Source of the DNA: Pocillopora damicornis
Taxonomy: Eukaryota
Direction of reading: 5' to 3'
DNA: 64,000 nucleotides
NCBI RefSeq assembly: GCF_003704095.1
Contig: NW_020846901.1
Coordinates: 248,001 to 312,000, forward strand
The notes beneath the pieces are model-generated. The model ran no database searches and was not told the DNA's origin. It saw nothing but the letters and a program-made list of their open reading frames with translations. Every line of letters begins with the position of its first letter. The stretch's first letter is position 1. The position numbers were made by a program, and so were the translations under genes. Below are positions 12,600 through 37,500 of this stretch, one piece after another.

Positions 12600-15500
12600 T
12601 GGAAATACCGTCAAATGGAAGAACACAGTATGCGTTGAGTAAGTAAAACCAAAACATGCTTTTGTCGTAAACACTGATCCGAAATTGGATAAATTGATTG
12701 TTACGAGCGGTGTTTGGGCTTATGTGTTTATGTACAGCATGGACATTTCGCAGGTCACAGGTGCATGTTTGCAAGCAATTTTTGTCTGTTAAATTTGATA
12801 TTTTTTATAAAGTAAACTTTGCCAGGTAACAACTAAAATCCTTAAGCTTTAGTTTTGCAAGTCTATGCTATAAAACGGAACAAGGATACAGCGATAGGTT
12901 TTCTTGATAGCTCAAGGTACTGACGTTTTAATAACAACCGGCATTAGCAATATTTCAATCTCACGCTCTGACGGTTTTCTCTTAACACTGATAAAGAGCA
13001 CTGCCTGTGTAGACAGAGGAGCAAGGGACATACCTGCAAATAAAAACAAGAGTTCATAGACATTCGATATATCGTATTTTGGACGTCAGAACTTAAAAAA
13101 TATGACTTTTCTTGTGTTCGTGAAAGAGTTTTTTGGCTAGCTACGCCCAGTCCGAAGAGTAGTCATTCCCAAAGGGCGTGAACGTAGTTCATTGCATGGG
13201 ACATCAAGAGAGCATACCATGAACTAATAACTATTAGGCGATATATAACTAAAAAGATCATTTAGTTTTTGCATTGGAATTGAAGCTTCATTTGTGATCG
13301 TTTCTAATCTGGTAAAGAAAAAGGAAAGTTCTTGGAAACAATTTCTTTTCCCGCCTGGCGCGACGGGTGGACTGACAGGTGGCAAAAATCATTATTTGTT
13401 TTAGAGGAGTGTCACCTTAATTTATAACTCTGTTTTTCTATGTTTCTATTTGTGATTTTGTTTTCGTTGGTAAAGAACAAAACCGGAATATATTAGAAAT
13501 GATAAATAAATCTGATGCAAGAAAGTCATCGTTATAAATCTGGTTTCTTCCACTTAGACTCCAGATAGAATGACAAATTTTGTACCAAAAATTGTAACAC
13601 ATAATGCTAGTTACCGACGTGAAGTTTTAAGTATTATGACAGCTTTTACAATAACTCGACATTAATTGTTTTCCTGGAACAATTACAAGGTAGGGGAGCC
13701 TCGTAATTAACGGTCAATCGGATAATTTGAGGGTAACCAATATTTATGAGCTGTTGTGAATTAAGAGATAAGAAATCCTTTGGGAAAATTTTCACAGCAT
13801 TCCTTACTGGTTACCTTCTTCGTATTTTGGGTCTCATGGACAGAACTGAGATGATTCAGGATTCAATGATTTTTAAAAGCCTGCTTCATCTCAAGGCGGG
13901 ACTTATTATTTCAATCTGAATATGCTTTTTTATAAAAAGAGCGGAATAAATTTTAGCCAACCTCTCTACAAAGAGTGAACTTCCATAAAACTTATTTTGC
14001 AGTGTATAATTCTAAATTTTGTTCAGAGGTTTATAAAATAGAAAACAAAAACTATCCTACTGAAATCGATAGATTCTGAATTTTTTCAAGTAACATATCT
14101 ACTTTATTTCAGACCTTTCTGACCAGACCTCTGAGGAAACTGACGTCATACCTCAAGATAACTCAGCTGATATCAGCGCTTTCCTTCTCCCTGCCATTGG
14201 CGCGTTACTTATGCTCATTTTCGGCGGTATACTTTTTTCAAGCGGAACCGTCCCATGCAAAACCAAAAAAATGTCGGAGGATAAGTTTAAAAGAAAATTT
14301 GAACAAAAATATGGGCGACGGACGATTTGTTTTCATAACATACCGGAGAAAATCGCAAAAGAACCGTCCTCTGTGCTGCAGCAAGAAAACAACGACGTTG
14401 TGGATGCTGTAAGGAAAGAATATCAAGATTTACCGCAGTTCCAGCCAGTCAGCGGATTAGTTGGCAACATCGGGGGATTACTTGGGCAGACATGCGTAGT
14501 AAATATATCTAAGGCGGAAGTCAGAGATACAGGTGTAAGTCCAATTCATTTCAACACAAAAGATTGCAAAAAGACTTCGTATCAAGACAGGGATTGCGTG
14601 ATGGAATGTTTTAGCAGAGACGACCATGCACAAAGAAATCCCGCTGCATCCAGCGGAATTGGTACTGATTCTCCGGATAGTTACGAAGTCGATAGTTTAG
14701 AAAAGTATCCGATCAGTGAACATCATTCTTTAAGTTTCCACGAAGGAGAAATAAATGAGATACCCGGCAGGCATAAGACACCTCAGTTTGACTATGGAGT
14801 TTATGGTGGAGGACGAGCAAGTGTGCTCCAGTTAGAAAGTGCTCCTAGCACTTTATGTGTTAAAGGCTGCAATTGTTCCATACATGGGGCAGATGCTGAA
14901 AAAATGAGAACCAGTGCAGAGAAGCCTCGAGTTAACAAAACACAACTTACTTGGGGTGATATTGCACAAAGCTCAAATAAAACTCAGAATCATGGGAGCG
15001 AATGTGACGCATATACAGCGCACAGTGATATGATAAAGCCTCAAACTCCAGGTGCGCAGATATCTGGATCTTTAACGTCAGAGAATATGAGAGAAATTAA
15101 TAAAAGTCCACTGAGACGCATGGATTTGGAAAAATGGCTAAACGATGTGGAAGAGTCCCGCAATGAAGGAGGGAAGATCAGCCCTTCGGCTATTGACTCT
15201 CCTGACGAGGAAATTGGAAGGCCTTGGTGCGCAACTCATGAGAGGGACTGTCAATCGAGCCGGAGAAAAATGCGTGCACCGCTTCAGGAAAGTTTACAGC
15301 TGTTGGCAAAACTGCAGGTAATTTCAGAAGATGATTTGCCTCTGGCTCAGAACTCAGTCCATCGTGGAGGTCGCCTAAGCTGCTTGCAAACGGTAAGGGC
15401 ACCAGGCTCACTGTGTTTGGATCCAGGTAGTTGCAAAGGGCATGGTGAGTTTCAGATGACCTCCAGCCAATCAGATAAGACAAATACGACAACTGCTGAA

Positions 15501-16802
15501 AATAGTTCTGAGTTTCTGAATGACGATCGTCAGCTTGTTACATCAAGAACTGAGCGCCTCGCGAAAGGTGGAAGACAGAGTACTTTAAATCTCCTTAGAG
15601 CGTCAAGTGCGATGTGTATTCATGGACCTTCGTGTAGAGTTCATTGCCAGAAAACGGTAGAAAAGTTTCCCTGCATACCTGAGAAAGGTTTTAAAGCGGC
15701 GTTACACTCTGAACAAACAGAACTAAGAGGTGCCAGCATTTTGGGTGCTGTCCAAAGTGAAGAAGAAGATAGAGCGATCATTGAAACCACTGCAAGACAA
15801 AGTGAATTTGTGAACACGGATATCAGAGAGAATGAACTTCGAGGGGCGAGTATCTTTGGTGATTTCTGCTCTGTGAGAGATATGAACTTGAGAGGAGCGA
15901 GCAGCTTTGCTGAGCAACCTAAAAGAAAGTTTCATAGTGGTCGCAGTTGTGGCGATGAAGCAAACAATTTTCAAATAAACTTGGAAGAAAATAGGGGTGC
16001 AAGTTGCTTTGCACTGATCGATGAAAGTGTAGCGGATACATCAAGCGTGACACTAAGCTTCGCTGTGGAATCTGACACAGACAGTTTTTTTCCCGATAAA
16101 AACTCGAGGCAGAAGAATAAGGTGGTTCTAAGTAACACTCTACATGACAACTTAGAAGTTAAAGATGCAAAGAAATACCAGACTGTGGATGGTAGAATCT
16201 CAACTACTAATGCCTCAGAAAAAAAGGATGTTGGTCTTGTCCAAAGAGAACATTCAAAAAATTTTGATCAGCGAATTTTAAAAGTGGGTAAAGACACTCA
16301 AATAATGTCTACTCTTTTAAATGCACTTCGACGAGATGGTGAAAAGCGCAAAGAGCAGCAAAATATCGACCAAGGATCCAATCATCTTACGAGCGACAAA
16401 GAAGCTTTAGTAGGAAATCTAAAAGTGTCTGTTTTGTACAAGAACGGTAATTCTGTCACCTCTTTGCTTTACGTCTCTATTTTGGGTCTTGAAGTTACTC
16501 TAAACGAAAATGTAATGCCAGAATGCGATGTTTACGTGAAAGTTTGCCTTTTACCAAAATTTTCAACATGGCAGCGTACAAGGACGGTAAACATCACGGA
16601 CAGCTTTGTTTTGAAAGACCATTTTGTCATGTCTGGAGTAAAAGCAATGGATTTAGAAGAAGCTATCCTCAGATTTATGGTTGTGCGTTTGGGAGAGGAC
16701 GACAAACCCTTTGCTCAGGTGGACGTGTCATTAGAGGAACTTAAGTCATGTGATAAATTCAAAAGGACTTATGTGCTGCGTGCGCCTACCGACAACGCAT
16801 AG
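12599..16802 (+). CDS. Synaptotagmin-like protein B (TM + about 700-aa repeat-containing linker + single degenerate C2, about 909 aa)
   Basis: Exon 12599-12638 (MEIPSNGRTQYAL, A|gtaagt, phase 1) and exon 14113-16802 after a tttcag acceptor. TM segment AFLLPAIGALLMLIFGGILF. C-terminal C2: VGNLKVSVLY...VYVKVCLLPKFSTWQRTR...FVMSGV...LRFMVV, similar to the C2A of gene A. Confidence 0.8.
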
Positions 16803-18329
16803 GATGATGGGACTTCTTAAAATGAATGGGAATTAATCGAGAAACTACTCTGTATATGACTAAAGGAAAAGAAAACCCATGATAACTCTCACTTTTAATC
16901 AAAAAGTGGAATACATTTTTTGTACCGGAAAAAGATCGATATTATTGTGACTTTTCTTATATTGGAAAGATATAATTAGATAGATCTCGGTTCGCATGAA
17001 CACTTTGAAAGATTTAACCTCCATTTTTCAAATTTAAAAAAAAAAAACTGAAAATCGTCCCCAATTCTAGTCATCTTGGCGACTTTTCTACCAAAATTTT
17101 CGTCACTTTGAAGCTTGTATTTCCTGGGAACTATTGATTTAAGATTTCCTGCCAATATACGTCTTACTATTTTTAACGACCTAAATAAATCCAATATGTC
17201 TTGACTGACCTACCTCCATTGAAGAAAAAACAGGTGCTTTATTTATGTGTTTCTTGCGTGCCCAACAGAAGAGTGTTTACACTAGATAAAAACCTCCGCT
17301 TTCGGGAAACTTGGAAATAGGAATCTTTCAAACTGTTCTCATAATAGATGGTTAATTAGCTTTGACAAAATTTAAATGCATTGGGTTCATTCGAAAAGAG
17401 ATCGATTAATTACCCCCCTAACATCACCTAAATAAATTTATTTCAGTTCTCTTAATTTGCGCCACAACGAAACCGAAAAAAATTCTCAAGGCTTTCCTAT
17501 TTTCGGCCTTTCAACAAACAAGCAGTTTAGTCCAGTGTAGCTCAAACATTTGCATAATCATAATATCTTTGTTTCCTAGAAGAATGTACCATTCACTCGA
17601 CCCTGTGAAGTGACATAACCTCTATTATCTATTTCTCGCCTTAGAGAGAAAGCGTTCAAAAATCTTATTTCGGCAGATGCTTTGGAATGATAATTGCCAT
17701 TTTGGATGGAATTTTGTTTTCAAAGGTTGAAAATAAAATCAATCAAGGAATTCACTGCAAGACGTCAAAAATCAATGAAAATCAACCCGAAAGATATCAA
17801 ATCAACAAAAAGTGAGTAATGGTAGAGAGATGTTTACATGACATCGACCTTTAGAGCTCTGCATTAATGTATTGTGGTAGAATCTGGAACGCAAGAAGGG
17901 GAGAAAAAACAGATTGGCGGTCCAAAATACATAATTTAACATTGATCGAATAGTGGTTCATTATTCGAAGAGTAATCTAATTCATTTCAGCGTAAATATC
18001 GTTACTTGTGTGACGCAAAGAGAGCTGAGTGGCTTTGCAGTATTTTGCATGACAACAAACCCACGGCCAAATGGAACAAAATGTTACGCACGAGTGAATG
18101 CGGAACTTTGAAAGACGTGTATGATGGACAGATACAAATGCTTTTAATAAGCCTTATTTATATTCACAACTAATTTGCAAACGGTAATCGAACTACTCGA
18201 CCCCGCGAAAAGTCCAAGTAAGCAGAGCCTTCGACACGTTTATGCATTAATAAGTTCCCGTTTGGTTGTGACTCGAGAAAGCAACGTTTTTTACTGCGGA
18301 AAAAGGAAGCATGACTTAAGAACGTTCAA

Positions 18330-19363
18330 ATGACGGTACGTAGACACGGTATAGTTTAAAAGACTTTCAAACTTTGGCGTCCTTTTAAATCGCGGCAAGT
18401 TTTGAAGAATTTCTTATTTGGCTGCCACTCATAATTTTTTTTTTCGGACAGGATCCCAACGTTCTTGGCGTTATTTTGGGGTCAGTTCTTGGTTTTCTGG
18501 CGGGAGCCATCGTAGTCTGTGTTGGATATTTTGTTTATACAAAAAGATCGGGGACTTATAGTCCACTTTCACGGGATGTACGTGCGAAGATCGATTACTA
18601 TTCCGCCTCAAATCCCGATGGCGCATTCCTCGCCGCCCAAACTCGACCAGTTCAAGTCCAACCAAATGTATATACGCTAGCAAAGTCTTCCGCAGAATCT
18701 TACCCGGAAATAACCGAACTAAACGATGGTGATCATCGGAGAATTCGCGTAACGAGGCCTTACGAAGCTGGTGCAATTGCTACCATCCCGGAGGACAGTG
18801 AGGACGTTGAAGACGGGAGCCCGCGAAGTCTTGAGAGAAACGGGTCGACCGGCTCAGACAAGCCAAAACTATCAAAACGAATGAGTTTACCCACCACCCT
18901 TAAATCTGATGGATTATTCAATCCTAACCCAGAAGAATTCTTAAAAAAGAAATTTTCATCAGAGGAGGAGGAATGTCGGCTTGAGTTCTCGTGCTTTTAC
19001 GACACGGCCAGTCGTGAGTTACACATTACCGTAATTCAAGTTGTTGGGATTTCTACGCCAAACGAAAGTTTCTTACGCCCGCCTAGTTGCAGCGTTAAAA
19101 TGCGTATATTACCCGAGATGTTGTCGTGGCAGTGGACACGCAGAATTTCACGTACTTCGAATCCTGCTTTCAACGAAACTTTCATCGTTCCTGGTTTTGT
19201 TCACAACAAATTACGAGAGTGCACTGTACACTTTGTGGTGTTGGATTTTGATCATGTGCAGGACACTGTTTATGTGATTGGGGAAGTAATCATGCCCTTG
19301 TCAGAACTACGAGCTAACAGACTAGAGAAGATTATCAAAAGAGTGAACCCGCTTGCTTTCTAA
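18330..19363 (+). CDS. Synaptotagmin-like protein C (TM + single C2A-like domain, about 305 aa)
   Basis: Main exon 18452-19363 follows a poly-T...cag acceptor in phase 0. The likely first micro-exon is ATGACG|gtacgt at 18330-18335 (tentative). TM segment VLGVILGSVLGFLAGAIVVCVGYFVY. C2: RLEFSCFYD...VKMRILPEMLSWQWTRR...PAFNETFIVPGF...VLDFDH...VIGEV. Confidence 0.82.
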
Positions 19364-22050
19364 GTTTATTGAATAAATTTTTTTGCAATGAATTCTCTGA
19401 CAATAACATGACGATCGGGGCAAAATGGAAATTAAACACAAACAGGAAAAAATTCCTTGTAAATTAAGCCCCTTTATTCATACGCATTTAAGCGAAGCGT
19501 TTGAGGAAAGCTATCGGACTCATTTAAAAATTAAGTTTACAAACGAATCACAGCTGACTTACTAATTTAAAAGAGAGTGACGCATTGTTAAGATATATAT
19601 TTGGAATATTGCGATCTTGACCTAGGTGGTATTTCGTAAATTCGTGAGAGATAGTAACTATTATTTACACGTCATTGTCATTATAATTTTTTCTCGTCAC
19701 CATACGCATCCAACTGAAACGATTTGCCCCTTGTTATTAAGCAGGTTTACCATTTCATCCTCAAATACAGCAAGAAAAATTTTTGACCAGTGTTGGAATT
19801 GTTCGTAATATATTTAACACAATTTGTTTCGTTTTCAATACTGGTTTCTATAATTGTTTAAAAAGAATATCGTTCTAACTTGCATATATTAATTATTGGC
19901 GCTTTTTGTTTATTGGGTGGCAGCAAATAAAGTCGTGTTAAGTAATCTCTGACTTAGTGTGATTTTATGAAACCTTAATCCTGTATTTCATCGCTAATAA
20001 TCCTCCAGGTATGATAATTATGGTATTTTCACAATGAAAATGAAATAAGATGGGAAATCCGTGAAAATTGAGGGAGACATACAATCTTCGACTATTCACT
20101 ATGAGCTGCTAATACAGCGATGTATTTCACTTGTGTTACGTGAGTGGAAACCGGAGTTTTTATGGCGGTTTGTGAGAATCCAGACAGACAACTGATTGAC
20201 CAATTATGATATAGTGTATACTGCTGTGATAAAAAAATCGACCCGAGTTCCATTAAAAAATCCGAGATTCGGTCTCGCTTATCAGTCTAGTTAGACAGTC
20301 CTTCTCTTCTGAGAAAATCTGATATGAACCGCACAGGGTTTAATATTTGTGTGGGGGAATCTGGGGAGAGAACAAATCTACTCTTGGTGCAAGGTTGGGA
20401 CATCATGGAGCAGCCACTAATTGGCGCAAAAAGGCATATAGAGCGACTTTTCAAGGTCAAATTAAACGGTTAAAAAGTTTTGTTTGATATCATTCATTTT
20501 TTCCTTGTTTTGAAACTACTATGGCGATATGTGATTTGTAACAGGTCATCGGGCTGAAACAGACACATATTTGTCCAGAGCCGGCAAGGTCAGCTGTGGT
20601 TTACATAATTCCTCGAGCAATTATAAATAGAAAGTCATTATCAGAAGATGGAGAGCTTAACTGCAATCATGTTTCAAAATATTCAGGTTCAATGGATAAA
20701 TTAATCCATTGCGGAAGAAATCACACAATTGCTCTAAATTGAGTCTATATTTGGCTGCAAAAACAAATCAATCGGTCACGCAGGCACGCAATCATCAAAA
20801 ACCTGCTCAACTCCTATAAGACTTATGTACAAAATAATCATCCCTTGAGTTTAAAGGGGAAACTTTTCATTTATCTATAAACCCGTCAATTACTTAAAAC
20901 TCTACACTGCATCTCCGAAAACATGTCAGATGAAATAGTGAAGGGAAACACACATAGTGATACAAGATGCGAGGATAAGGGGAAAGAGAAGGAATGGCGC
21001 TGAGTAAACACATGAAGAATATATTTGAACCAAACAGAAATTTATATTACTAGAAAATTCACCCCGATAACTCAGCTGTTCCATTAAAATAATTTCCCTT
21101 CTTAAGCTATGCATGACTAACATAGACAGGGAGAGGAGGAAAGTGAACCGGGAGGGCTCAAGAAGCCGCTCATGCAGACATTACTTCATACCCCCACCGA
21201 TCACTAAGATTAGTACCGAGAGAAGCATTTTCCCTCTTATGGAATCAATATGCTGACGAGGAAACATTCGTGACAAGAATATGTTACCTCTTGAGTGGAA
21301 GCTGGGAAGTTTATCCATAATAGATATATGCGCAATCATCCCGCGAGAGCATAAACAAAAGAATTTTGTTTGTTCAAACATTAACGTCACCGGAAAGCTG
21401 TTTGGGTGCTTCGTACATTTTCATTCTTTTCAGTTCCTACGTAGTCCTAAAAGCCCGCGTAACTTCACGATTTCGCCACCATCTCGCGCTAATTTGTGAA
21501 CTCCAAATTAAATTATGTGAAATTTGAGACAGCTGGTATTTCCCAGTATTACCCTGTGTCTTTGACTCACGCAATAATCATAATCTCAACAAAATCAGAA
21601 ATACCCCTATTTTCTCTTGTTTTAAGGGAATATAACTGTCAGTAAAAAAATTAAAAGCTTTTTCATTCGCTATTTCCAAAGGAAGTGAAAATTCGAAAGC
21701 GAAATGTATTCCTTACAAGGGATAATCTCGAGTATGTTCTCACCCGCAGACTTCCGGTTACTCCTTGCGTGACAGAAAGCATTGTGCTTTGAGAGATCCC
21801 ATTGGTCTATCCCAAACCGGAAGCAAGGTAGCTCATAGAACACGTAAAAACGAGAACATAATTTATTTTTGACTTGGTGACTTAGCGCGCGCCAATATTG
21901 CTTTCGAAAATATGACCGACTACAATAATTTCGAGACAAATATACTCACTTCAATCATGAAATATTTCTGTAGGTAAATTCCATGGAGCAGTGCTCGAGT
22001 AAAATTTGGGTTTCGATTCACCAATGGACAGCCGTGTAGAAGTTTCCTAG

Positions 22051-25000
22051 ATGGTTAATCAAGGTAAACTACTTCAATCTAACGTTTTGTTTCCAGTATC
22101 AGTGACAATATATTCGACTGCTTTTAATAGTGTTTTAACCTTTCTGTTTTCCTTCTTTATTGTAGTTGTTTTGGCTGTTGGTTTGGGTTTAGTTGCCGGA
22201 TTGGTTGTGGTCGTTGTTTATTTGCTGATACAGTATTTTCATCAACGTTCTTCAACAAATAATTATAAATACACCCAGCTGACATCTGATCCTACACTTC
22301 GCTCGCGGACAATAATCAACCAGGACATTCCACCATTCTATATTCCCCAGGCCGTCTCTGTTCCACAACAACAACCGGCTATCGGAGAACTTCAACGAAC
22401 TTGTAGTATTTCTAAAGAGGAGTATCGGCATGGCCATGCTCATCTGTCAGCGACAGTTCACAGTGTCAACGTGCGGCGCAAAGCGGAAGATGGAGGAGGC
22501 ATACAGCTAGATGCAATCAACACTGGAACAATCTCGCCTCCGTCCATAACACCCAAATTGCCAAGAACCCCGAGGACACCGCGAAAAATTTCGCACCCAC
22601 AAAAGCAATCCTCGAAAGAAAATCTCTCTATTCCGCAGCAAAGGAAAGTTGCGGTTCACAAGAAAAACCCAGAGATAAACTTGGGAAAACTTGAGTTTTC
22701 CCTATATTACGATCAGTCTTTTCGTTTGCTGCAAATTTACGCAACCCGTGGGATTAAGATAGTGATTCTGGGAAGCGTACATCCACCTGATATACATGTC
22801 GCTGCATCGATAGTTTTAAATGGCAAACAAATTTGGGAACAGAAAACTCGTGTGGTTAAGAAAACGAACGATCCGCAGTTTAATGAAAAATTGGAGGCGT
22901 ACGGAATAACTCAAGGAAAACTTTCAGAGGGTATGTTACGCTTTCAGCTGGTGAATACTCAAACGAACACAATTATCGGAGAAGTGGAGTACATTTTAAA
23001 AGATCTTCCGCCGAACAAGTTAACAACGAAAACTCTTCCCCTGATTCCAGTTGAAATAGATGAAACAGAATGCCCCATCGAGGTATGTGTTTTGAAACTT
23101 CTTGAGCGCAGCTAATTACACAATATTGACTTATATTGCGTGACTATTTAATGTCAGTTTTTTATATCACAGATTTAAAAAAAATTCACAAAACTCAAAA
23201 TTTTTGACGAGTTCGACAAAATCTACAGAAGACCCAAGAAACATTCACTGTTGATCAAGATATCAGAAACAGACGGTAAAAATTAAGTTTATTTAAATGA
23301 ACGGATGCTTATATCATGTAAAATACCAGAAAGTTCCTCATTCCAATCTATTGAAATTTTTCAAAAGATTCCGTCAGTGTCACAGTTTGACGCGATGCTC
23401 TTTTGTTTTGCTCCTCAATTTTGCTGTGTAATTAAAAAAAAAAAAAAAAAAAAACTAATATTGGTTTTTGTAAAAATCTCAGATTTTGGTTTTTTTCTAA
23501 TGAATTGGAAAAATATACTTTAACTATGCTCCGGATCAAAAGAGCCGGAACCCAAACAATCGAGGGAGAAGATGACATTACGTCAGAGAGGCGACAAACT
23601 TGACGCCGCGACGTAGATGATAAATTTTCCTTCTTCGTATAGCTTAGAAACATCTGAGACTTTTCCCCATGTGCCAAAATTAAATAATTCCACACTTCCT
23701 TATTTTTTATTTTTTTTCCTCTCAGTTCTCAGGCAGGGATTCATACTTCTATGTTAAAATTTTTCCACACGGTTCATGATCGATATCGCCGTTATGCTGA
23801 CGCAAACTGGTCGCTAAATTTGGGTTGTTAGGAGTTGATTTAAGCGATATAGGTCTGGAGCACGTTGAGAGACTTGTGCTAATTGCAAAGTTTGTCGACG
23901 GTAGGGATGCTGACGCAATGCATTAAAAAAAATAGAAATTTCATCAACAAAATATTTTACAATGGGGGGGTTGTTCACCAGCGTCTGAATGAAATTTAGG
24001 AAGATATTAGGGATTATATAAAATACACATTTTAAACTCCCCCCCTCCACTCTTGTTAAGTCCTTGCACGAATGCAGCAGCTGTTTTATTCACAGCAGCG
24101 ACAAAAAAAAGAGAACTTAGCAGAAAATTTTTGATACGAGGACAGCAACTGAAAAAGGATAAAATTAATTCTTACGCGCTTGACGCTGATGGTTACGAGC
24201 GACTGTGAAAGGGTCGTCTTAAACTAAATTGGGAGGACCATAAAGGTGGAGAAAGAAGTTTTGTCTTCTGGTTGCGGTCTGAAGAACATTTTCCTTTACG
24301 GAAACCTCATGACCTACAATTGAGCGCTTTTTTGGGCTCGCTTTTATTTCGGGAACATAACTGGGAGAAGCAAAAACCATCGAGTCCAAGCCACTTAGGT
24401 AGCCGCTTTTGACAGTCAAGTGTTCGCTTCCGTTGAGTCTAACAAGCTCACTTTTTACATCGGATTGATAAATGTCTCGGCTGGTTTTTAGTTAATCTCA
24501 TCCGTCAATATTTCAGGCAGAGACGCACTCCGATGTTTTGAGTTAATGATGTCAGGCAGAAACAGATTTCACCATTGCAATCACATCTTAGTTATCGAAA
24601 ACGGACAGCTATACAGCTATAGTCTGTGCATGCGTGGCCATAGTAGAAGGGGAAGCGAAAGAAGAGAATGAGCTTCGCCCTTAAAGCAATTTTGCCCTCT
24701 CCATCCTCTCCCCCCTCTCTACATCACCTTTTCTACGTTGGCCGTGTAGGCATGGAAAGCAACGACTAAGCATTTGTATCGACCCCCCCCCCCCCCCCCC
24801 CCCCCCCCTTTGACAAGAAAACGGCCCCTCAGGCAAAAGTTTAAAGCTAAGTAAACCATGGAGAAACTCGAGAGGGTCGTCCATCATTGACCTTTGCTAT
24901 AACCTTCCCGGCTTATCTTTTTCTGACTTTGTTTGTTTTCAGGAAGAAGTTGAAGATTTATCCTCTGAGCTTGGCGAGCTATCGATTTCTTTGTGTCACA

Positions 25001-25785
25001 ACCCGACGGATCAAAAACTAATGGTGAAGGTAAACTGTGCCAGGGGCTTACAACAGATTACAAAGGACGGGAGACTAAGTGAGTAGCCCTTCCAGATAAC
25101 AACAACAATAACAAAGTGTATAAATAAATAAGAGAAAGAAAGATAATAAAACAAGATAATTTTTTTACAAACTCTCTCTACCATAACGAATGATTAATAA
25201 CTTCTTAGATTATTTTCATGGATGATATATCGGAGTTTTCTCATATGTTGAAGCACAAAGTATCAAGAAAAATGCTCGATTAAGACACTCAATTGTACAT
25301 TAAATGAAAATGGTTGAATTTTTTAGATACCTTATTTAATTGCAGTGAAATATCTTTGTGCAGTTCGATCGACATGTCCTTTCGGCTCGCCAAACACTGT
25401 TCAAAAACTCTTGGAAAAGGTTTGGTAATAGCGTACAGTTAACGTCGACTGTCGGTATCTTTTTTCAGATCCATTTGTGAAACTAGATCTCACCTTCTGT
25501 GGACGGAAGCTTAGCACTCGGACGACAAAAACTGCTCATAACACCAAAACACCAAACTTCAGCGAAATGTATGTGTTCGATGTGGACTCAGACAAACTGC
25601 CTCAGATCACGCTGTTCTTCAAGGTTAAGCATCGTGGTAGAGTGCGTGACGTTCCCTTGGGCACGGTGCATCTTGGGTATTGCGTGAATGTCGAGAGCGA
25701 ATACAAACACTGGGAACAAGCCATGGAAAAGCCTCACCTTGAAATAGAGCAATGGCACACTCTCCAAGAGTATTTTATTGAATGA
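22051..25785 (+). CDS. Synaptotagmin-like protein D (TM + C2A + C2B, about 460 aa), probably Ca2+-independent
   Basis: Exons 22051-22063 (MVNQ, tentative), 22166-23082, 24943-25078 and 25469-25785; phases 1, 0, 1. TM segment VVLAVGLGLVAGLVVVVVYLLIQYF. C2A: LGKLEFSLYYD...DPQFNE. C2B: LGELSISLCHNP...NPFVKL...PNFSEMYVFDV...HWEQAMEKPHLEIEQWHTL. Confidence 0.87.
24783..24807. repeat. Poly-C tract
   Basis: About 25 consecutive C in intron 2 of synaptotagmin-like gene D. Confidence 0.9.
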
Positions 25786-26989: not shown

Positions 26990-29927
26990 CTACTGGTGAT
27001 AAACTGATGTTATGGTATTGTCTTTCCCCGCAGTCTCATCGCCTTCAGGTCCTTGATAGAACTTCTCTTTTCCAAGGATTCGCAAGCCAATGGGACGCAA
27101 GACTTGTTTAAGGTACCCATGAACGTTCAAGCCTCTTGCTCCTAGCGTTTGAGGGGCCATGTTGTAAAAGCTCTTCAGTGGGGACATGAGAGAATCAGCC
27201 AAATCATGATCCACAATGTCAGCGTAACACGATACCCAAACACCGTCCACGATCATGGTCCCTTCTTGGGTAACTGGTGCAAAGGCACCAAATCTTTCAG
27301 CCGTCGAGACTGACATAACCTTCCTTGCAATAGGAGCATGGTACGTTGGAACGTGAACGAGGATGTAGTCACCTGGTTTGATTTGGGATGCATGCACCGA
27401 GCGAAAGGTATTCCCTCCCAACTTAGCACTCAGAGGTCGGAACTCGAACACAAGATGAGCCTCACTGAGTGTGAGCTTGATGTAGTCTTCAGTAGTGATG
27501 GTGTAATAATGACCTGTGTAGGGAAGAAAATTTGAGCTGTATCTGTATCTTAAATGTTTTGTCCTTGAGAGTCTTTTCAAATACAAGTCTCCCAGGACTT
27601 TTATTAGTACCAAAATAATATTGGTTCTGTAGCAAAAGAGAAAAAAAAAACAGAATGCAATTGGTGATTAAATCTGAAATATGAGAATTTGGAAGCCAAT
27701 CAGATTACAAGGATAACCAGTCATTTCCAAGTAAATGTAATAACGGCAAACACCCTGTCAAGGAGAACTTAAAAATAAATAAAAAGTTTAGGAGACAAAT
27801 ACAAAGATGTAGGAATAAATTATTCAAGTGTACCACCTACCCTTGTGGTCAGGCGCTTGATCCAAGAAGGTAACCACATGACTAAAGACAACTTCGCCAC
27901 CCTTAGAAAAGGTCTTGACTGTGTCTCCAATGGCGAGCTCACTGATGGGAATCTTCTTCCCAGATCTGACCTCTACTTTAGCTTTCGAAGGGAAGCATGT
28001 TCCCCCGCCTGATTGCTTAACGTTGACGTCGATTACACAGCCATCTGATACAAAGGGGAAAGATTCATTAGCTAATTTACTTAGGTGTTTGACAAGCTAT
28101 AAGCCTTGAACCGTAATTTGCTTGATGAGGAAATTTCGACGGAATCAACTTAGATGGACGGGTTAGGGGACAGACTTTTCCTTAAGCTTTGTTCACTGAT
28201 ATGGGTAGCTATTTAAATGATTAGAATTGATACCAAATATGTTTTCGATAGCAGGGGTCGAAACCACCAATACTTAAAGAACATTTCTGCGTCAGCTTTG
28301 CTCCCGATATTTTTTTCCCAAACTGTAAATGCCCATCTAATTATCTCGTACCCAGACCACGTACGGCCAACCGAGGCAAGCTTTCAAATTGGAGGGCTCC
28401 TCGGCTAGGGTCAGGTCAGCAAGGATAGTCTACATGATAAAATCATTCAGCTCAGGCACTCTAATTGATTAAATCCCTAAACCCAAATGTTACTCCGACG
28501 TGCATCTTCCACTTACCTGTGGGAGCAGGCCACAGCTGAGCAGATATGAAATTTTTGTGTTTTAGGACACCTTTTGCTTGATGAAATCCATTCCCGTCCC
28601 ATAACAGAACGCTACAATCTTTGCTGTCATCTCCATCTTTGATGTCAACGAACATTATTCCCACTTGCCCTCGGAAAACTGCGGTATTGTTAGATACAAT
28701 AGGCTTACCAAATTCTTCCTTGAGGTACTCTAACAGAGGTGCTCGTTCATAGAAATAATGGTAGCCTTTCAGACCTTCCTTGCTTCCGTTCCTTTCTGTT
28801 GTGACGTTTAACACGGCGCTCATGCGCAATATGCATGTGGCGTTTGGATAGAATTTGAGCTCACGACTGTCTTCTGGGAAAAGGTACTCTTCAACATTCA
28901 AGCGGTTGTAAATTCCTCCATAATTTTTATCGCCAAGATACATTTTTTGAAGGATGGAGAAAGATGGCAGCATTTCTGTAGATGCAATGAAAGTGTTAAT
29001 GTCTTGAGACCGTAAAACTTTACACTTCTTACACACATATGTTTACATATTCATCGTGTAATAGAATTCACTTTGCTGCGGCCATAACCTCGGTTCGAAA
29101 TAAAGAGAGCACAGCGGGGCTCCTGGTCAAAGAACTTAAAAATTTTCCCGCGCAGATCTCCTCATTTCAAAGGGATGTGGGATTTAATTAGCGTTCGTTG
29201 AAAGAAATGAAACAGGCACTTCTCCGAAAAAAACCGATTAAGTTTCCATCGGCCGGCTGCTTTTTTCGCATCTAATACGTCTCATTGATTTCAGTAAACG
29301 ACGGCAGATTGGTATACGGAACCAGGCAGTGTATATTCATACAAAGTATTGGTATCACGAGACAATGAACATAAAAACTTGTCTTTATATCATGGTGCGG
29401 ATACCGAATTACGAGATCGCCAGAAAGTCCTCCCGTACCATTAGCCCTCAATGAAAATGGAACCACCACGAAAGTAACTAAATTGCGCATAAAGAAAAAT
29501 GAAAAAAAGCAATGCAGTAAGGTACAGTTAAAAGCATGTGAAAAACGTTTCCTGAGCAAAAGACTGTAGATGCAGCACGGAAGAGCAAAAATTCTAGTTA
29601 GCTTCAAAACTTAAGTTGGTGTATCGTATAAGGCTTCTGAGCCTAACTTATTTCTCATGAATAGTAGGTGGTGTCCTTATTTTAAAAACTAAACCCTCGA
29701 GGTCACAGTGGTGAATGGCAGGATTACAAGATCCCACGAAAGGCTTAATCGGGCTTAGTGATGTTTACATAAACCCCGCTGTGTATTACTAACTATGCGG
29801 CTGCCAACATCCACACTTAAGGGAGCCGATCAAACCGCCACAAATAGAGCATACAAGGACACTAATACTTACTGGTAAAGGCCACCGGAATATTAAGCAC
29901 AAGGAGTATCGCCACCATCACCTTCAT
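26990..29927 (-). CDS. Secreted Tae4-like (amidase-fold) domain fused to a Hedgehog-type Hint/Hog autoprocessing domain, 413 aa
   Basis: Exons 29927-29873 (signal peptide MKVMVAILLVLNIPVAFT), 28975-28517, 28044-27841 and 27513-26990. All introns are GT-AG in phase 1; 1242 nt open in total. Hint: GGGT|CFPSKAKV...ISELAIGDTV...VVTFLD...LTLSEAHLVF...ASQIKPGDYI...GAFAPVTQEGTMIVDGVWVSCYA, then an SRR-like HDLADSLMSPLK...VHGY. N-domain: LPSF...NATCILRMSAVLN...YFY...LLEYLKEEFGKP...FRGQVGIMFV...SVLLWDG...QLW. Confidence 0.9.
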
Positions 29928-31558: not shown

Positions 31559-34500
31559 TCATCTCTCAAAGATTGCAGCCATAAATCGAATGTCGGCGGG
31601 TTCCCATTTACCAGGCGCGTCTTCCTCGTGAACAAACATCAGCGATTCCTCCTTTAAAGTCCAAGGCGAACATTCGCCTGTCTGACGGCGACAAAAACTG
31701 TAATACCTCGCACTCTGTCGGATCCGTGTTACAACCACATAATGGTGCTGGCCATGTTTACTGTTGTCTTTACTCACAATAACTGGGTATCCTTTTTTCA
31801 GAAGATCGATGATCAAGTTTTTCCACGAGCCTGCCTTGCCTCCATGGTATCCTCGATGAATAACTTTAAGCTCTCGTCCCGGGACTTTCTCAAAGGCTTT
31901 CTTGATTCGCCCCATGTGAGCAGGGGAGGTTACTCCTCCACCATGGTGTGAACAATGCGATCCAAGCACGGAAAATATCCGTTGCGTCATGTTTTCTACC
32001 GATGTGTCCATTGTTAGAGGTAAATGAGCGGGCCAATCCAACATATTGTTCAGTGGTCTGTAAATGTAAGAAAAATTAGAGAGGATTAACCTAAACATCC
32101 TTTATTCATTTCCACACTTTGAAAATTCATGGTGTCACTTTCGTATGTAGAAAGAAAAACACCTTTGGATAGACTGTATATTGGAATAATGAGGACCTGG
32201 GATTGATTTAGTGATAAGAACAATTTTTTTCTGGGGGTGGGAGGAAGGTTTTAGCTCTTTGAAAATTAACAAAACTCCGACTACTCGAACAAACAACATC
32301 ATTCGCAACACGTCTTCACGTTTTTTCCTGTTTCTTTTCCCCCCCTGAAACCCACTATACTGATTCGCAAGCCAACGTGACTATGTAACATGCTGTCTCT
32401 GTTTGCTACGCTAAATCACTTCAACTACTCACGGATAACTTGAATTGTAAGTTCTAGCCGCCATATTATTGAAGTAACCGAGTATCTTTGCCCACGCCAC
32501 TGGACCCGAACCTGTCGTACACTGGCCATGATGATGCTGACGATACTTTGGGAGCAACTCTTCATGTGGTATTCCAAAGTGCTTGTTGGAGAAAGCACGC
32601 CGATGCCTTCTATTCTTCAAAATAATTCCATAGTTGATAACCATGGTCTGAGTCCCACGGGTCCGCAGTTCTACTTTAAAACGTATTTCCCTTCCACCGA
32701 GGTTTCTCCGAACAAAATTTTCGTCTGCGTCAACTTTAACTTTGATAAAACGATCGCCCGTCTTCGTCAGTTTGAAGAAACGTTTGCTAACCATACTGAT
32801 ATCTACATTTCCGTCACTATCACACAAATCACTTAAAACGCGACAAAGTCGTTTCTGCCAACGTTTCTTGCCGCTCTTTGCTTTTATCCAATCACCATCC
32901 CGAAGGCCGACGAACTTGACACGAACATCACGAAAGCCCTCGCCGAGAGGAATCCGAACCGAGTCGCCCGGTTGCAGTCCCAGCTCTGCTTTGAAACCAT
33001 CTTCAGTTTCTTCCACTTCGAAGTTATACTCCGTTTCTAGGTTAACAGATGATTCATGTGTTGGCGAGGTTGTGATTGGTTCAACTAGAGTTGTAGGCTT
33101 TGTGCTAACGTCTGAAAGCAAAAAAAATACATTCAAACGGCAGGCAATCACGTCCTAAACACTAAGAATAAGTCTTAGCATAAATAAACATTAATGGCGA
33201 CCATTAAGACTAAAAGATCCCGTACACAACATACATGTTACTGTAAAAGAATGGCCTAGCGACAACCAACCGACAATCGGTAAACAGTCGGTTGATTGTC
33301 GGTCGACTATCAGCCGACATTTCTTTTCCGTGTTGAGCTGTCTATCACACCGCCCATTAACCCAACTCTTAAACAGCATACGTGATGAGTCCTTTTTTTT
33401 GAAAGAGAGTTCCAAAGATCGGCAGAGGGAGAGGGAAAGGGGAGACAAACCTGAGGTTTTCCTTTTGTATACAGAGACTCGATTTCCTCCAAAAGTTTCA
33501 TAAGCCACTAACAAAAAGTGTAGAATAAAGCAGTGGGTGGGGGTACACGGTCACATCATTCATTACTTACCCCCTACCGCCATGGACAGCCACTCGAACC
33601 TGTTCCACTCTGGCGTCTTTTTCAAACGCTCTGCTTGTTCTTTCCATTCTCTCTCCATGTTGGGTAACTTCCTCGTTACTTGTTTGTCCAGGTGTCTCCA
33701 ATCAATATCCTATGTAACAAGAACGCATGAGAGCGAGCACACGCAATGGGTACAGTTTCCCACTATTTTCCATTGCGAATTTTGATTCATATCAAACGGA
33801 ATCGTTTATCTGATACTTTTCTTCTATTTTCTACATGACGATGAATTGATATTGCGGGGAGATGTTACTTATCAGTCACATTAGAAGTGAGATGGTCCAG
33901 GCACCTCCTCAGTTAGCCTCACACAGGTTATAGTGCGATGGAACTATCATTTTCTTTAATTCTCTTAAATTCGCCGCAAACATACCAAATAATCGTTTAT
34001 GCCTCTAATGCGGTTGCAACGAACACAAAGAAGGAACAAATTGTTTCCGGGGTTGTTTACAAATACTTTGCACACCGAAGATCTCTCGAGCCGTTAATGA
34101 CTTCTTTTGCTTTAACTTTTTGAAATTGTTTTTCCGCAGAGAAAAAAAAAAGATTTTTAATATGGCTATCACAATTACTGGTGGACCCAGTAGTTTACAT
34201 TGTGGGCCAGACAACATGAAAGAGAGAGTAACAAATACACCAAATAAACATAGAGTGCTTGAAAATCCCGGCTGACGGGAGGCAAACCAGTAGGCTTTCT
34301 ACACAGCACAGCTAAGGAGTCGACCTCGGGGCGATCGAGAACAATCCAGTGAGTGGCAGGGTGGAGGACTTGAACCTAGGACCACCAGATTACAAGTCCA
34401 GCGCCCTAACCACTCAGCCACGCCGCCCTATTATATGTGACATCCATTACCTTAATCCCGACTTCTAAATATCTGTAACTGATCTGTTTTTCTTATGGAG

Positions 34501-37500
34501 AACCGTCAGCCTTTAAGTTGGTAAAAGTGTTTGAACTATAGAGTTGGTGATCTTAATCACTAAAATCCTATGTTAATCCTTAAAACCATACTTACATATT
34601 ATACGTAATCTTCGTTAATCATTGTAAGTATGCCAAAAAGTGTTATCGCGTTACTTAAGCCGTCGGCAAAAAATGACTTCCATTATCTCGAACTGTGCTA
34701 AACTCTTATGATTACCATCTCCCATTATTCTCCTCTCGCTTAGCCTGTTCATTGTCGACCACGTCCTCGATTACGATTTTCTTTTAAGACCTATTTGACA
34801 GCTTAGGAAAGCTATGGCTCTTCCTTGAAAAATGCTTTCATGCGGCCTTGATGTCTTCATCTTCCAAAATGTTTTATTATTGGCCTTATCTGGGGGGCCT
34901 ACAAGAGTTGCTCGGCTCGGTGGGACTTCTCTCTCTCGCGCATGTGCTGGTCTGTTTTGCCCAACGGCTAGAGTTGCGTATGGTTTTAATTCAAGTCATG
35001 GTTTTAGCTTATAAAGGCTCAGAAAAAGGTAAAAAAATGGTACATACGGTAGAATCTGTATCAATGTTCCTTGTGATGGCGACCATTTTGTTTACATCAG
35101 TATCTTCACATGCCATGAGACCATCAGGTCTTAGGCGATAGACTCTGTGACAGCCATATCCATGACTGTTGGCTTGGGCTGTAAGTAGGTCTGAAGGACT
35201 TGGTAAAGATCCTTCTTCAGCAAGACGATGATCTCCCGTCTGTCTAGCTGTACAAATAACAAAACTTCATTCATCATTCACACAGCTCTTCACTGTTAAG
35301 CCACTGCTACCAACAGCCAATAGTTTCATTTTGGTTCAAGCTATTCAATCCTATTCCAGCTGTTTTGTTTAACCATAGCATACTAGGCCCTTATAAAAAC
35401 TGTAGTTGATAAGTACCAAGTCACATCTCGCTTGTAAACTTAACTCTAAGCCCTATTTTTCAGCATATAAATGTGTGATAACTGGGTCCTCTCATCACAC
35501 AGCAGGCACAAGAGCCTATTAACCACACATTCAGCTGTTCTGTTTATTAATTTACCCAGAAAACCACAAACAGTTTAGCTTCATGAAATAAAGCCACTTT
35601 GGGACGAAATTAGAAGCTTTATACCTGGCCAATTACTAGTATATGCTCTCTCGTTCAGTTTATTCATGTAAATTTACACCCATTAAAACAGCTTTTGGTG
35701 TAACAATATCACCACTTCAAATTCAAATTTGGTTAAAGTGTTCTTTATCTAAGCAGTGTTTGCTTTTTTTTTTAAGTCAGAGATTAGCTCTTCAACTCAG
35801 CTAAAATAACCAGAGTTGGTGCCCACATTATTGAGGTGTTGCCTGATTAGAGGTGCCTAAATGCAGTGTCATTCTAAACAGGATGTTATACACTCTATGA
35901 ACACAAACCGGCTGAGATGATCACATATTTTTCTCCAGTTTTTCCATTGATTTTCGCTTCCCAGTATGCAACATAATTATGTGGGAGATCCTTCCTGAAA
36001 ATTGGCCTTAAACCCATGATGTCATCTTGGCTGATAGCATCTGACAAAGTGTAAAATTCCTCCTGAGTTTCCCAAGAAACATCGTCTGTGCCGCACCAAA
36101 ATGTACTGGAGGATTCTGAATTATTTAATACCCTTGGAGGATCTGTAATCTTGATGCCATCTTCACCATATTTCCATTGCATGGATCTGTTTTTGTCCCT
36201 GTGAATATGAAATAAAATTAAATAACCATGTTCAAGAAAATTGACAGTCGCTCCAAATAGATTTATAAATCGATTGCTCTTTGTAACTTTTTTTTAATCT
36301 TGTTCTTAGTGTCTGAATCACCACTGATTTCATTAATAACATGTGTCAGGCTCTTAGAATCAAAGCAAATTTGCCAGAAATTTCCACAATTCTAAATTAA
36401 AAGGTCATGTTCATGCATCACTTTATAAACAAAGATGGCATGCAATGAGTCAAATGAAATATTGATTTGCCATCTGTCTAGAACAGTATCTTTCTCCCTT
36501 TAAATATTGCCTTTTTTCTTTCTTTTCTCTTTTGGCTATGCACTGTATTTCTGCATCAAGGAATACAAAACAAGTGAAATCTCTCAAGACCCTCTTACAA
36601 TTGTGGAATTTGTTCAAGAACAAAAGGAAATACTCATACTCAAAGCTAATCCATGAAGGGGAAACATCTGATAACACTTAATATGCTCATATCTAAATTT
36701 TTTCTAATAAATCCTCCTTAACTTTCTGGTTTTACCATCTGAAGACCTCTTCATATAGTCTAGTCAGACTGGTGGGTCAAAATTTAAAGACTGCCCCCTT
36801 CTAATCTTTCTTTGCTGAAATCTCTGAGTGTTTACAGCAGAGGTTGGCTAACCCTGTTGCCAAGAGGCTAGTTTTTACAGAGGCCACAACCTTCACAAGG
36901 CAGGAAAATTCCCCATATATGCACAATAAACTAGTTACCAGGATGACATGTAAAATATTGCAAATTGTTCATGCAAAAAATTAAGTGAGTCAAGTTCTCA
37001 TTTTAACAGGACTATGTCTCCATTCAGTAGCTAAGGTGGATCCATTCAGTAGCTGAGGTGGATATGAATCAAATACAAAGACTTCTCATTAACCAAGCTT
37101 GCCCTACTGCCCAGCTCTGATGACGGGGCTCTTCATTGGTTCCATTCATCCTTTGATATTCCTGCTATTGTAACATAAACTGGCATGTGCCTCACTATTG
37201 AATTATAACCTTATCTTTTGACAAGCCACTGAGTAGATCCATTCATAGATAATATTAATCCATAATGAAACCCTATGAAACAATGTCTGACAGGTTTTTT
37301 CATTAAATTGTGTTGATTTCATCTTGGGCAGAATCAAAATGCCTCTGATCTGACTTACAAGAGGCTTAATCCACAGAGACAAATTACTTTAAAAGCTAGG
37401 TTTGCTCTTTTATCTGGTTATGCTTAGCTTTAATTAGAAAGGTAAATAGTATACTTGATTGGGTATGCGAAGCATTTCCCATTGGTGCATTACTCTTGTT

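Follow-up and report, generated by a model that had tools for sequence, protein, structure and literature searches.

A Hedgehog-related 'Y hog' protein of stony corals and sea anemones carries a Tae4-family domain ahead of its Hog module

Two cnidarian proteins, Nv 120428 of Nematostella and the product of the Acropora millepora expressed sequence tag DY579185, were listed as 'Y hog' in the supplement of Bürglin 2008 (PMC2362128). Their N-termini were considered novel, with no similarity beyond Cnidaria, and divergence was preferred over the acquisition of a domain; the Nematostella gene models of the time covered the Hog half only (PMC2362128). Nematostella has also been reported to encode two homologs of tae4, the gene of a bacterial effector family (PMC8713801). 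Here we analysed a gene of Pocillopora damicornis that brings the two subjects together. It occupies positions 29927-26990, minus strand, of a 64,000-nucleotide stretch of contig NW_020846901.1 (248,001 to 312,000; hereafter the window), and is the stony-coral ortholog of cnidarian 'Y hog'. A first-pass annotation, made from the letters of the window alone, had proposed that it encodes a signal peptide, a Tae4-like domain and a Hedgehog-type Hog module, an architecture now borne out by Pfam, profile, fold and translation evidence.

We translated the exons and searched them one by one, and natural full-length orthologs (P0043, P0055 and P0065) stood in for the whole chain. Exon 2 alone matched the Pfam Tae4 profile (PF14113) at E 0.0033 and 18 bits, below the 27-bit cut-off, and three Salmonella Tae4 entries of the PDB (4j30, 4hff and 4jur) at E 0.005. 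Tae4 was the sole Pfam match in the N-terminal exon, where the HH_signal (Hedge) domain gave none. Since such a score is a lead and not proof, we collected relatives of the domain, and HMMER, run exhaustively over 1.84 billion representative proteins, returned only 17, most of them exon-sized open frames of eukaryotic assemblies. A profile built from 14 relatives found the solved Tae4 chains at E 3.3e-16 (4j30, 4hff and 4jur) and 1.2e-12 (4hfk), and Pfam Tae4 was matched at E<=0.01 by 21 of 25 relatives (top 6.9e-12). The Pfam comparison proposed in the first-pass annotation therefore fails the cut-off for the exon of the window itself and succeeds through its relatives.

Comparison of folds gave the same identity. 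The AlphaFold2 model of exon 2, made without templates and from an alignment without bacterial rows, reached a predicted local distance difference test score (pLDDT) of 88.9, and the top 11 Foldseek matches in the PDB were all Tae4/Ssp effectors (prob 1.0, TM 0.62-0.78), followed by a jump to E>0.6. The nearest clusters in the ESM Atlas were likewise Tae4 (score 0.96). The N-domain is thus a member of the Tae4 family, a match far beyond chance and a secure assignment. The N-domain motifs named in the first-pass annotation are present in the order given there, and the Tae4 catalytic Cys is kept, Cys66 of the precursor aligning with Cys44 of Tae4. Protein and alignment searches found no second Tae4-like locus in this genome.

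The gene consists of four exons, and its three introns are all bounded by GT..AG and interrupt the frame in phase 1. The coding parts (55+459+204+524 = 1242 nt) add up to 413 codons and a stop. Exon 1 translates into a hydrophobic leader of 18 residues with the ...IPVAF(T/A) ending common to the orthologs, and the linker at the start of exon 3 carries the third conserved Cys (GC.ID.N.KQS). In Logan RNA contigs from four runs of four studies, all labelled coral or marine metagenome, the joints 28975|29873, 28044|28517 and 27513|27841 are exact, and a single 2450-nt contig (run X8, record 14) crosses all four exons. The contigs place the 5' untranslated region up to ~29994 and the 3' untranslated region below 26700. 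Public RNA runs contain 0.34-0.49 of the words sampled from the 2938-base stretch, as would be expected of a spliced message. The Y-hog gene is therefore real, intact and transcribed, and the 413-residue reading frame and three junctions predicted in the first pass stand.

These data also bear on whether the fusion is an artefact, through bacterial contamination, mis-assembly or a wrong join of neighbouring genes. The bacterial origin of the N-domain family and the old Nematostella models that held the Hog half alone are what such an explanation could draw on; however, the domain exon is flanked by spliceosomal introns and natural full-length orthologs exist in several species. We rejected contamination, mis-assembly and mis-joining because RNA contigs from four studies join the exons, and consider the chance of an artefact negligible.

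Two departures from the main transcript were seen. In three runs, low-depth RNA contigs retain intron 3, which adds five codons before a stop and leaves only the first 52 residues of Hint; this is probably unspliced pre-mRNA, and a Hog-less isoform is conceivable. In two runs, contigs 95-99% identical to the window have 27-29 additional bases at the stop codon, altering the last few residues, and probably come from sister lineages of the coral.

The fusion is not confined to Pocillopora. Full-length proteins of 397-474 residues with an identical layout were found in Oculina patagonica, Acropora millepora and Montipora capricornis, two of them under the NCBI names 'tiggy-winkle hedgehog protein-like' and 'desert hedgehog protein-like' and the third as 'uncharacterized', and P0043 and P0055 are further full-length copies. 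A 2120-nt contig of a public run encodes P0043 in an uninterrupted frame, and as a single chain P0043 matches both Drosophila Hh (6td6, 1.8e-20; 1at0, 5e-18) and Tae4 (7e-5) in the PDB. In a fragment from the sea anemone Actinostola, the Tae4-like domain runs into ...GGL|CFPS; a protein search with this fragment matched only itself and recovered no Nematostella protein. Nv 120428 and DY579185, the two Y hogs of 2008, have the motifs and the three conserved Cys of the window protein, and DY579185 reads identically to P0005/P0054/P0082. In our tree a clade with support of 98/98 unites the window sequence with those of Acropora. The fusion is thus conserved across Scleractinia and Actiniaria, with Oculina, Acropora, Montipora, Actinostola and Nematostella answering the proposal to look for it in other cnidarians, and the Tae4-Hog combination goes back at least to the divergence of stony corals from sea anemones.

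The first-pass annotation had taken the fusion to be undescribed. As regards the pairing of domains, no paper in the searchable literature links Tae4 or Dae4 to Hint or Y hog; as regards the gene family, the claim does not hold, as the family is that of the 2008 'Y hog' and only the identity of the N-domain is new. Both PF14113 and PF01079 were already marked on one ortholog among the precomputed Pfam hits of a protein database. NCBI uses Hedgehog-like names for proteins that have no Hedge domain (P0065 and P0082); a gene so named, which may or may not be a Y-hog, appears in a study of coral gastrulation (PMC12360431).

In the Hog half, the Pfam Hint profile (PF01079, cut-off 29.7 bits) matched exon 3 at 50.2 bits (profile positions 10-62) and exon 4 at 87.8 bits (66-183). 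The catalytic set comprises Cys188 (Cys1), Asp233 (Asp46), Ser256-x-x-His259 (His72) and Cys335 (the SCYA Cys). Hint position 46 is Asp in the window and D, E or H in the orthologs, and in work on the roles of Hog residues the D303H swap was active in Drosophila Hh (PMC9163320). The conserved tail can be aligned with the first part of the Hedgehog SRR, and this SRR-like segment also aligns with the three other Hog genes of the genome. As the Hint catalytic residues are intact, self-cleavage at Thr187|Cys188, a junction that a residue count places where the first-pass annotation had it, is likely. Transfer of a sterol to the released fragment would be plausible by analogy with Hedgehog.

The genome of the window has four Hint loci, and in the remaining three (L006, L007 and L008) Hint is uninterrupted. 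Their junctions read ...SYN|CFP, ...WGG|CFS and ...RRL|CFP, respectively. The gene with ...WGG|CFS is probably a true Hedgehog, since this is the sole Gly-Cys junction. L008 has His at the general-base position together with SxxH, as in Y-hog.

We compared the active site of the N-domain with that of one Tae4 from an E. coli record and 54 from GTDB genomes. Cys66 is kept without exception in the Y-hog sequences that extend over it. The position of the catalytic His126, in contrast, is Ser in the window and S, G, N, D or R across the orthologs, with H once. It is preceded by Cys139, which is specific to the Y-hog clade; bacterial Tae4, amphioxus and Dreissena have Gly there, as do, with one exception, the Cys-less exons described below. 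Further along, the four residues preceding the His of a nearly invariant HQ motif are deleted relative to bacteria, and Cys135 and Asp137 are lost with them, whereas C(S/A)D.CH is present in every sequence among the 54 bacterial Tae4 that covers the region. His150 of the HQ motif aligns with His140, conserved in bacterial Tae4; the motif is Phe-Gln in Nematostella Nv 120428, and is equally kept in the Cys-less relatives, including Dreissena P0011.

In Salmonella Tae4, C44A, H126A and D137A each abolish toxicity, and single mutants of Cys135 or Cys139 are likewise non-toxic (PMC3695027). Tae4 and Tse1 cannot do without the His of their Cys-His dyad; NlpC/P60 enzymes accept differing third residues (PMC3695027). 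The first-pass annotation had the fragment bind or cut bacterial cell wall; with His126 replaced by a variable residue and the Asp137/Cys135 loop deleted, cutting is doubtful. An N-x-T glycosylation sequon directly before Cys66 is conserved in nearly all Y-hog orthologs, and a second one (S-N-x-T, near domain residue 95) is widespread among them as well. Glycosylation at the entrance of the former active site would agree with a non-enzymatic role. Cys139 may pair with the old nucleophile Cys66 as a disulfide.

Because His126 and the Asp137/Cys135 loop are lost, we favour a tethered, non-catalytic module for cell-wall binding or signalling over an active amidase. In the explanation that we prefer, the gene would make a secreted precursor whose Hog module (Hint and SRR-like tail) cuts the chain at Thr187|Cys188 and would leave the N-fragment (~residues 20-187) as a sterol ester, held, by analogy with Hedgehog, on membranes or lipid carriers. 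This fragment, a Tae4-fold domain of the metazoan Dae4-like lineage encoded by one symmetric phase-1 exon, would most likely no longer hydrolyse peptidoglycan in the manner of Tae4 and would instead serve as a tethered binder of peptidoglycan, muropeptide or another ligand. Sterol ligation and a location at the surface or in mucus, both put forward in the first pass, we infer from Hedgehog. As a whole, a Y-hog with a sterol-tethered, non-catalytic Tae4-fold binding module has, in our judgement, about an even chance of being right.

Several observations weigh against this explanation. On the Hog side, position -1 is Thr in the window and T, S or L in the orthologs, where Hedgehog has Gly, and Thr69 of the TxxH motif is Ser, giving SxxH at Hint 69-72 (Ser69 is also found in one other Hog gene of the genome). 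The full-length AlphaFold2 model of the ortholog P0043 is of low confidence (pLDDT 49.9), so that the SRR fold is putative. To our knowledge, a sterol adduct has been demonstrated for no non-Hedgehog animal Hog protein. On the side of the cargo, Cys66 has remained invariant over a very deep split, and a dead site would not obviously preserve it; the nearby His150 of the HQ motif could act as a substitute base, to judge from its position; and the actiniarian-like fragment P0009 has His at the canonical 126 position. Finally, nvDae4 of Nematostella is an active, Cys63-dependent peptidoglycan hydrolase with bactericidal activity (PMC8713801). It may or may not be Nv 120428, whose Cys stands at 64 in the Bürglin sequence.

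In the main alternative, which follows the first-pass annotation, the N-fragment would still be an active peptidoglycan amidase with a rewired centre (Cys66 with His150 or another base), acting as a sterol-anchored antibacterial effector on the epithelial surface or in mucus. It stays alive through the absolute conservation of Cys66 and the possible identity of nvDae4, which is induced by 2'3'-cGAMP and by bacterial infection (PMC8713801), with the Nematostella family member. The third residue of the triad is variable among NlpC/P60 enzymes (PMC3695027), but the dyad His is essential in Tae4 and Tse1, yet its position is unconstrained here. His150-Gln151 is nearly invariant, as a substitute base might be; however, HQ is equally conserved in the Cys-less sister proteins and so is not tied to thiol chemistry, its His aligns with one already conserved beside the true triad of bacterial Tae4, and Nv 120428 has Phe in its place. 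The new clade-specific Cys beside the position of the lost His points to a site that has been remodelled, possibly with a disulfide. We regard a still active amidase as unlikely.

In its boldest form, this alternative would have hexacorals deploy an enzymatically active, toxin-derived peptidoglycan hydrolase with a rewired Cys/His centre, lipid-anchored to epithelial membranes or vesicles by Hedgehog-type cholesterolysis. We think this improbable; if true, Dae proteins would gain their first lipid-anchored member and animal Hog domains their first cargo with enzymatic activity. Hexacorals are not known to make sterols themselves, and the scheme would link sterol supply to antibacterial defence in these animals.

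Relatives of the domain place the exon among other Tae4 descendants. Y-hog N-domains are monophyletic (98/98) and fall, together with Cys-less Tae4-like exons of another assembly, a Dreissena protein and P0015, in a 99/98 clade separate from 19 bacterial Tae4 and an amphioxus lectin-Tae4 fusion. The tree is unrooted and its bacterial sample is one narrow subfamily, so that the number and direction of transfers are not readable from it; a bacterial origin of the domain is taken from the Dae literature. The Cys-less exons (L003:5908-6576 and L004:5929-6441 of ENA assembly ERZ21939214) have D or S at the position of the nucleophile and share the four-residue deletion and the HQ motif with the Y-hogs. 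They have phase 1 on both sides and share the terminal G|GTAAGTGG boundary with the Y-hog exon, which fits a mobile exon cassette; no Hint exon was found downstream of them within flanks of ~3-6 kb. The symmetric phase of the domain exon, noted in the first pass, is likewise compatible with exon shuffling. As the sister exons share both deletion and exon phase with Y-hog, we count them as support for the non-catalytic reading.

The stem branch of the Y-hogs is long, at 1.5-1.6 changes per site, and would fit a change of function. This and the loss of the catalytic His and Asp could also accommodate a Tae4 fold that has been fully repurposed, the sterol-modified N-fragment being a short-range cell-cell or developmental signal unrelated to bacteria and comparable to the cargo of Hedgehog or of nematode Hog proteins. 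Such a signal would share its delivery chemistry with Hedgehog, and three conserved Cys with conserved N-glycosylation sequons are typical of extracellular ligands. However, there is no known receptor or expression pattern, the core Tae4 motifs around the substrate cleft have remained recognisable after a very long time, and, of the characterised cnidarian relatives, the closest belongs to the immune genes. We therefore find a pure cell-cell or developmental signal rather improbable, and retain the non-catalytic binding module as the preferred reading.

Tae4 homologs of Branchiostoma (P0063, P0017 and P0061) keep both Cys and His. Their architectures combine a signal peptide, a Cys-rich N-terminal domain and Tae4, and tandem Tae4 repeats also occur. 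The Cys-rich domain is putatively C-type-lectin-like, as judged by eye, and on this evidence a Tae4 domain has been shuffled into multidomain proteins in amphioxus, too.

Table 1. Positions in the window of the exons, intron 3 and key residues of the Y-hog gene
Feature	Position	Strand	Remark
Exon 1, coding part	29873..29927	-	Start codon, 18-residue signal peptide and first base of a split Lys codon
Exon 2, phase 1/1	28517..28975	-	Entire Tae4-family (Dae4-lineage) domain, 152 aa, precursor residues 20-171
N-x-T glycosylation sequon (N-A-T-C)	28836-28844	-	Adjoins the codon of the former nucleophile Cys on its 5' side
Cys47 of exon 2 = precursor Cys66	28833..28835	-	Aligns with the Tae4 nucleophile Cys44
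Cys120-Ser121 of exon 2 = precursor 139-140	28611..28616	-	Ser at the position of Tae4 catalytic His126
His131-Gln132 of exon 2 = precursor 150-151	28578..28583	-	Nearly invariant HQ motif
Exon 3	27841..28044	-	15-residue linker, then Hint residues 1-52
Cys188 = Hint Cys1, CFP motif	27995..27997	-	Predicted autocleavage site Thr187|Cys188
Intron 3	27514..27840	-	Within the Hint domain, Pfam Hint positions 66-68
Exon 4, coding part	26990..27513	-	Remaining Hint, SRR-like tail, stop codon 26990-26992

In the neighbourhood, a gene with multiple C2 domains (C2 matches at E 3e-10, 1e-6 and 5e-8) lies on the plus strand at ~14211-25785 and converges on the Y-hog gene. RNA contigs over the 3' end of Y-hog continue for >2 kb below 26700. 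The minus-strand open frames upstream, at 31559-38795, had no Pfam match at E<=0.01.

The above results identify for the first time, in structure and in ancestry, the cargo that a cnidarian Hedgehog-related protein carries at its N-terminus and that has counted as novel since 2008. They reverse the published preference for divergence over domain acquisition, as a domain of toxin ancestry sits on a symmetric exon before the Hog module. For the study of Dae proteins, the gene represents a new way of building a transferred antibacterial gene into animal biology, as what would be a lipid-tethered and probably catalytically silenced derivative. For the biochemistry of Hedgehog, it provides a naturally occurring Hog in which -1 is Thr, position 69 is Ser and the general-base position is, across orthologs, Asp, Glu or His. 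In coral transcriptomics, names such as 'tiggy-winkle' or 'desert hedgehog protein-like' are misleading, as their bearers may not be Hedgehog ligands. The gene is of interest to studies of how Hedgehog evolved, of horizontal transfer into animals and of coral immunity.

A functional analogy to the preferred reading is found in non-catalytic peptidoglycan recognition proteins, which have kept an amidase fold, lost catalytic residues and become sensors or binders of innate immunity; their fold, a T7-lysozyme-like zinc amidase, is unrelated, and they have no autoprocessing lipid tether. In nematode Warthog, Groundhog and Quahog, choanoflagellate Hoglet and Lophohog, a Hog module likewise delivers an unrelated secreted N-domain. 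Their N-domains have no relationship to Tae4, that of Hoglet being cellulose-binding-like (PMC2362128), and a bacterial toxin is not known as the source of the cargo in any of them.

With Hedgehog (Drosophila Hh and Shh; 1at0 and 6td6), the window protein shares secretion, Cys1, Asp46, His72, the SCYA Cys and the SRR-like tail, and the same mechanism would be expected, an N-to-S acyl shift followed by attack of a sterol hydroxyl. Unlike Hedgehog, it has neither the Hedge (HH_signal) domain nor an N-terminal Cys for palmitoylation; -1 is Thr and not Gly, Thr69 is replaced by Ser, and an intron lies inside Hint.

Bacterial Tae4 of Salmonella and Enterobacter (4j30, 4hff and 4hfk) matches the N-domain in fold (TM 0.7-0.78) and in the motifs N.C.(I/L)RMS..LN, Y.Y, YL...G.P, G(I)(I/M), LW(N/D)G and a terminal LW, at ~22-24% identity. 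The window protein differs in having Ser for His126 and a C135-S-D137-x-C139 loop shortened by four residues. It also differs in being eukaryotic, intron-flanked, secreted by a signal peptide and probably glycosylated, and no Tai4 immunity partner applies to it.

The domesticated amidase effector 4 (Dae4) of Nematostella, nvDae4, is likewise a secreted eukaryotic Tae4 descendant of a cnidarian, with Cys63 against Cys66 as counted from the N-terminus (PMC8713801). It was described as a stand-alone active hydrolase, whereas the window protein is fused to Hog and has no equivalents of His126 and Asp137. Cnidarian Y hog itself is the same family and shares the signal peptide, the three-Cys N-domain, the ...S/T/L|CFPS junction and a Hog with the ...HDLA..LM.PL... 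tail (PMC2362128). Where that paper had the N-terminus as novel, we find a member of the Tae4 family on a shuffling-competent exon.

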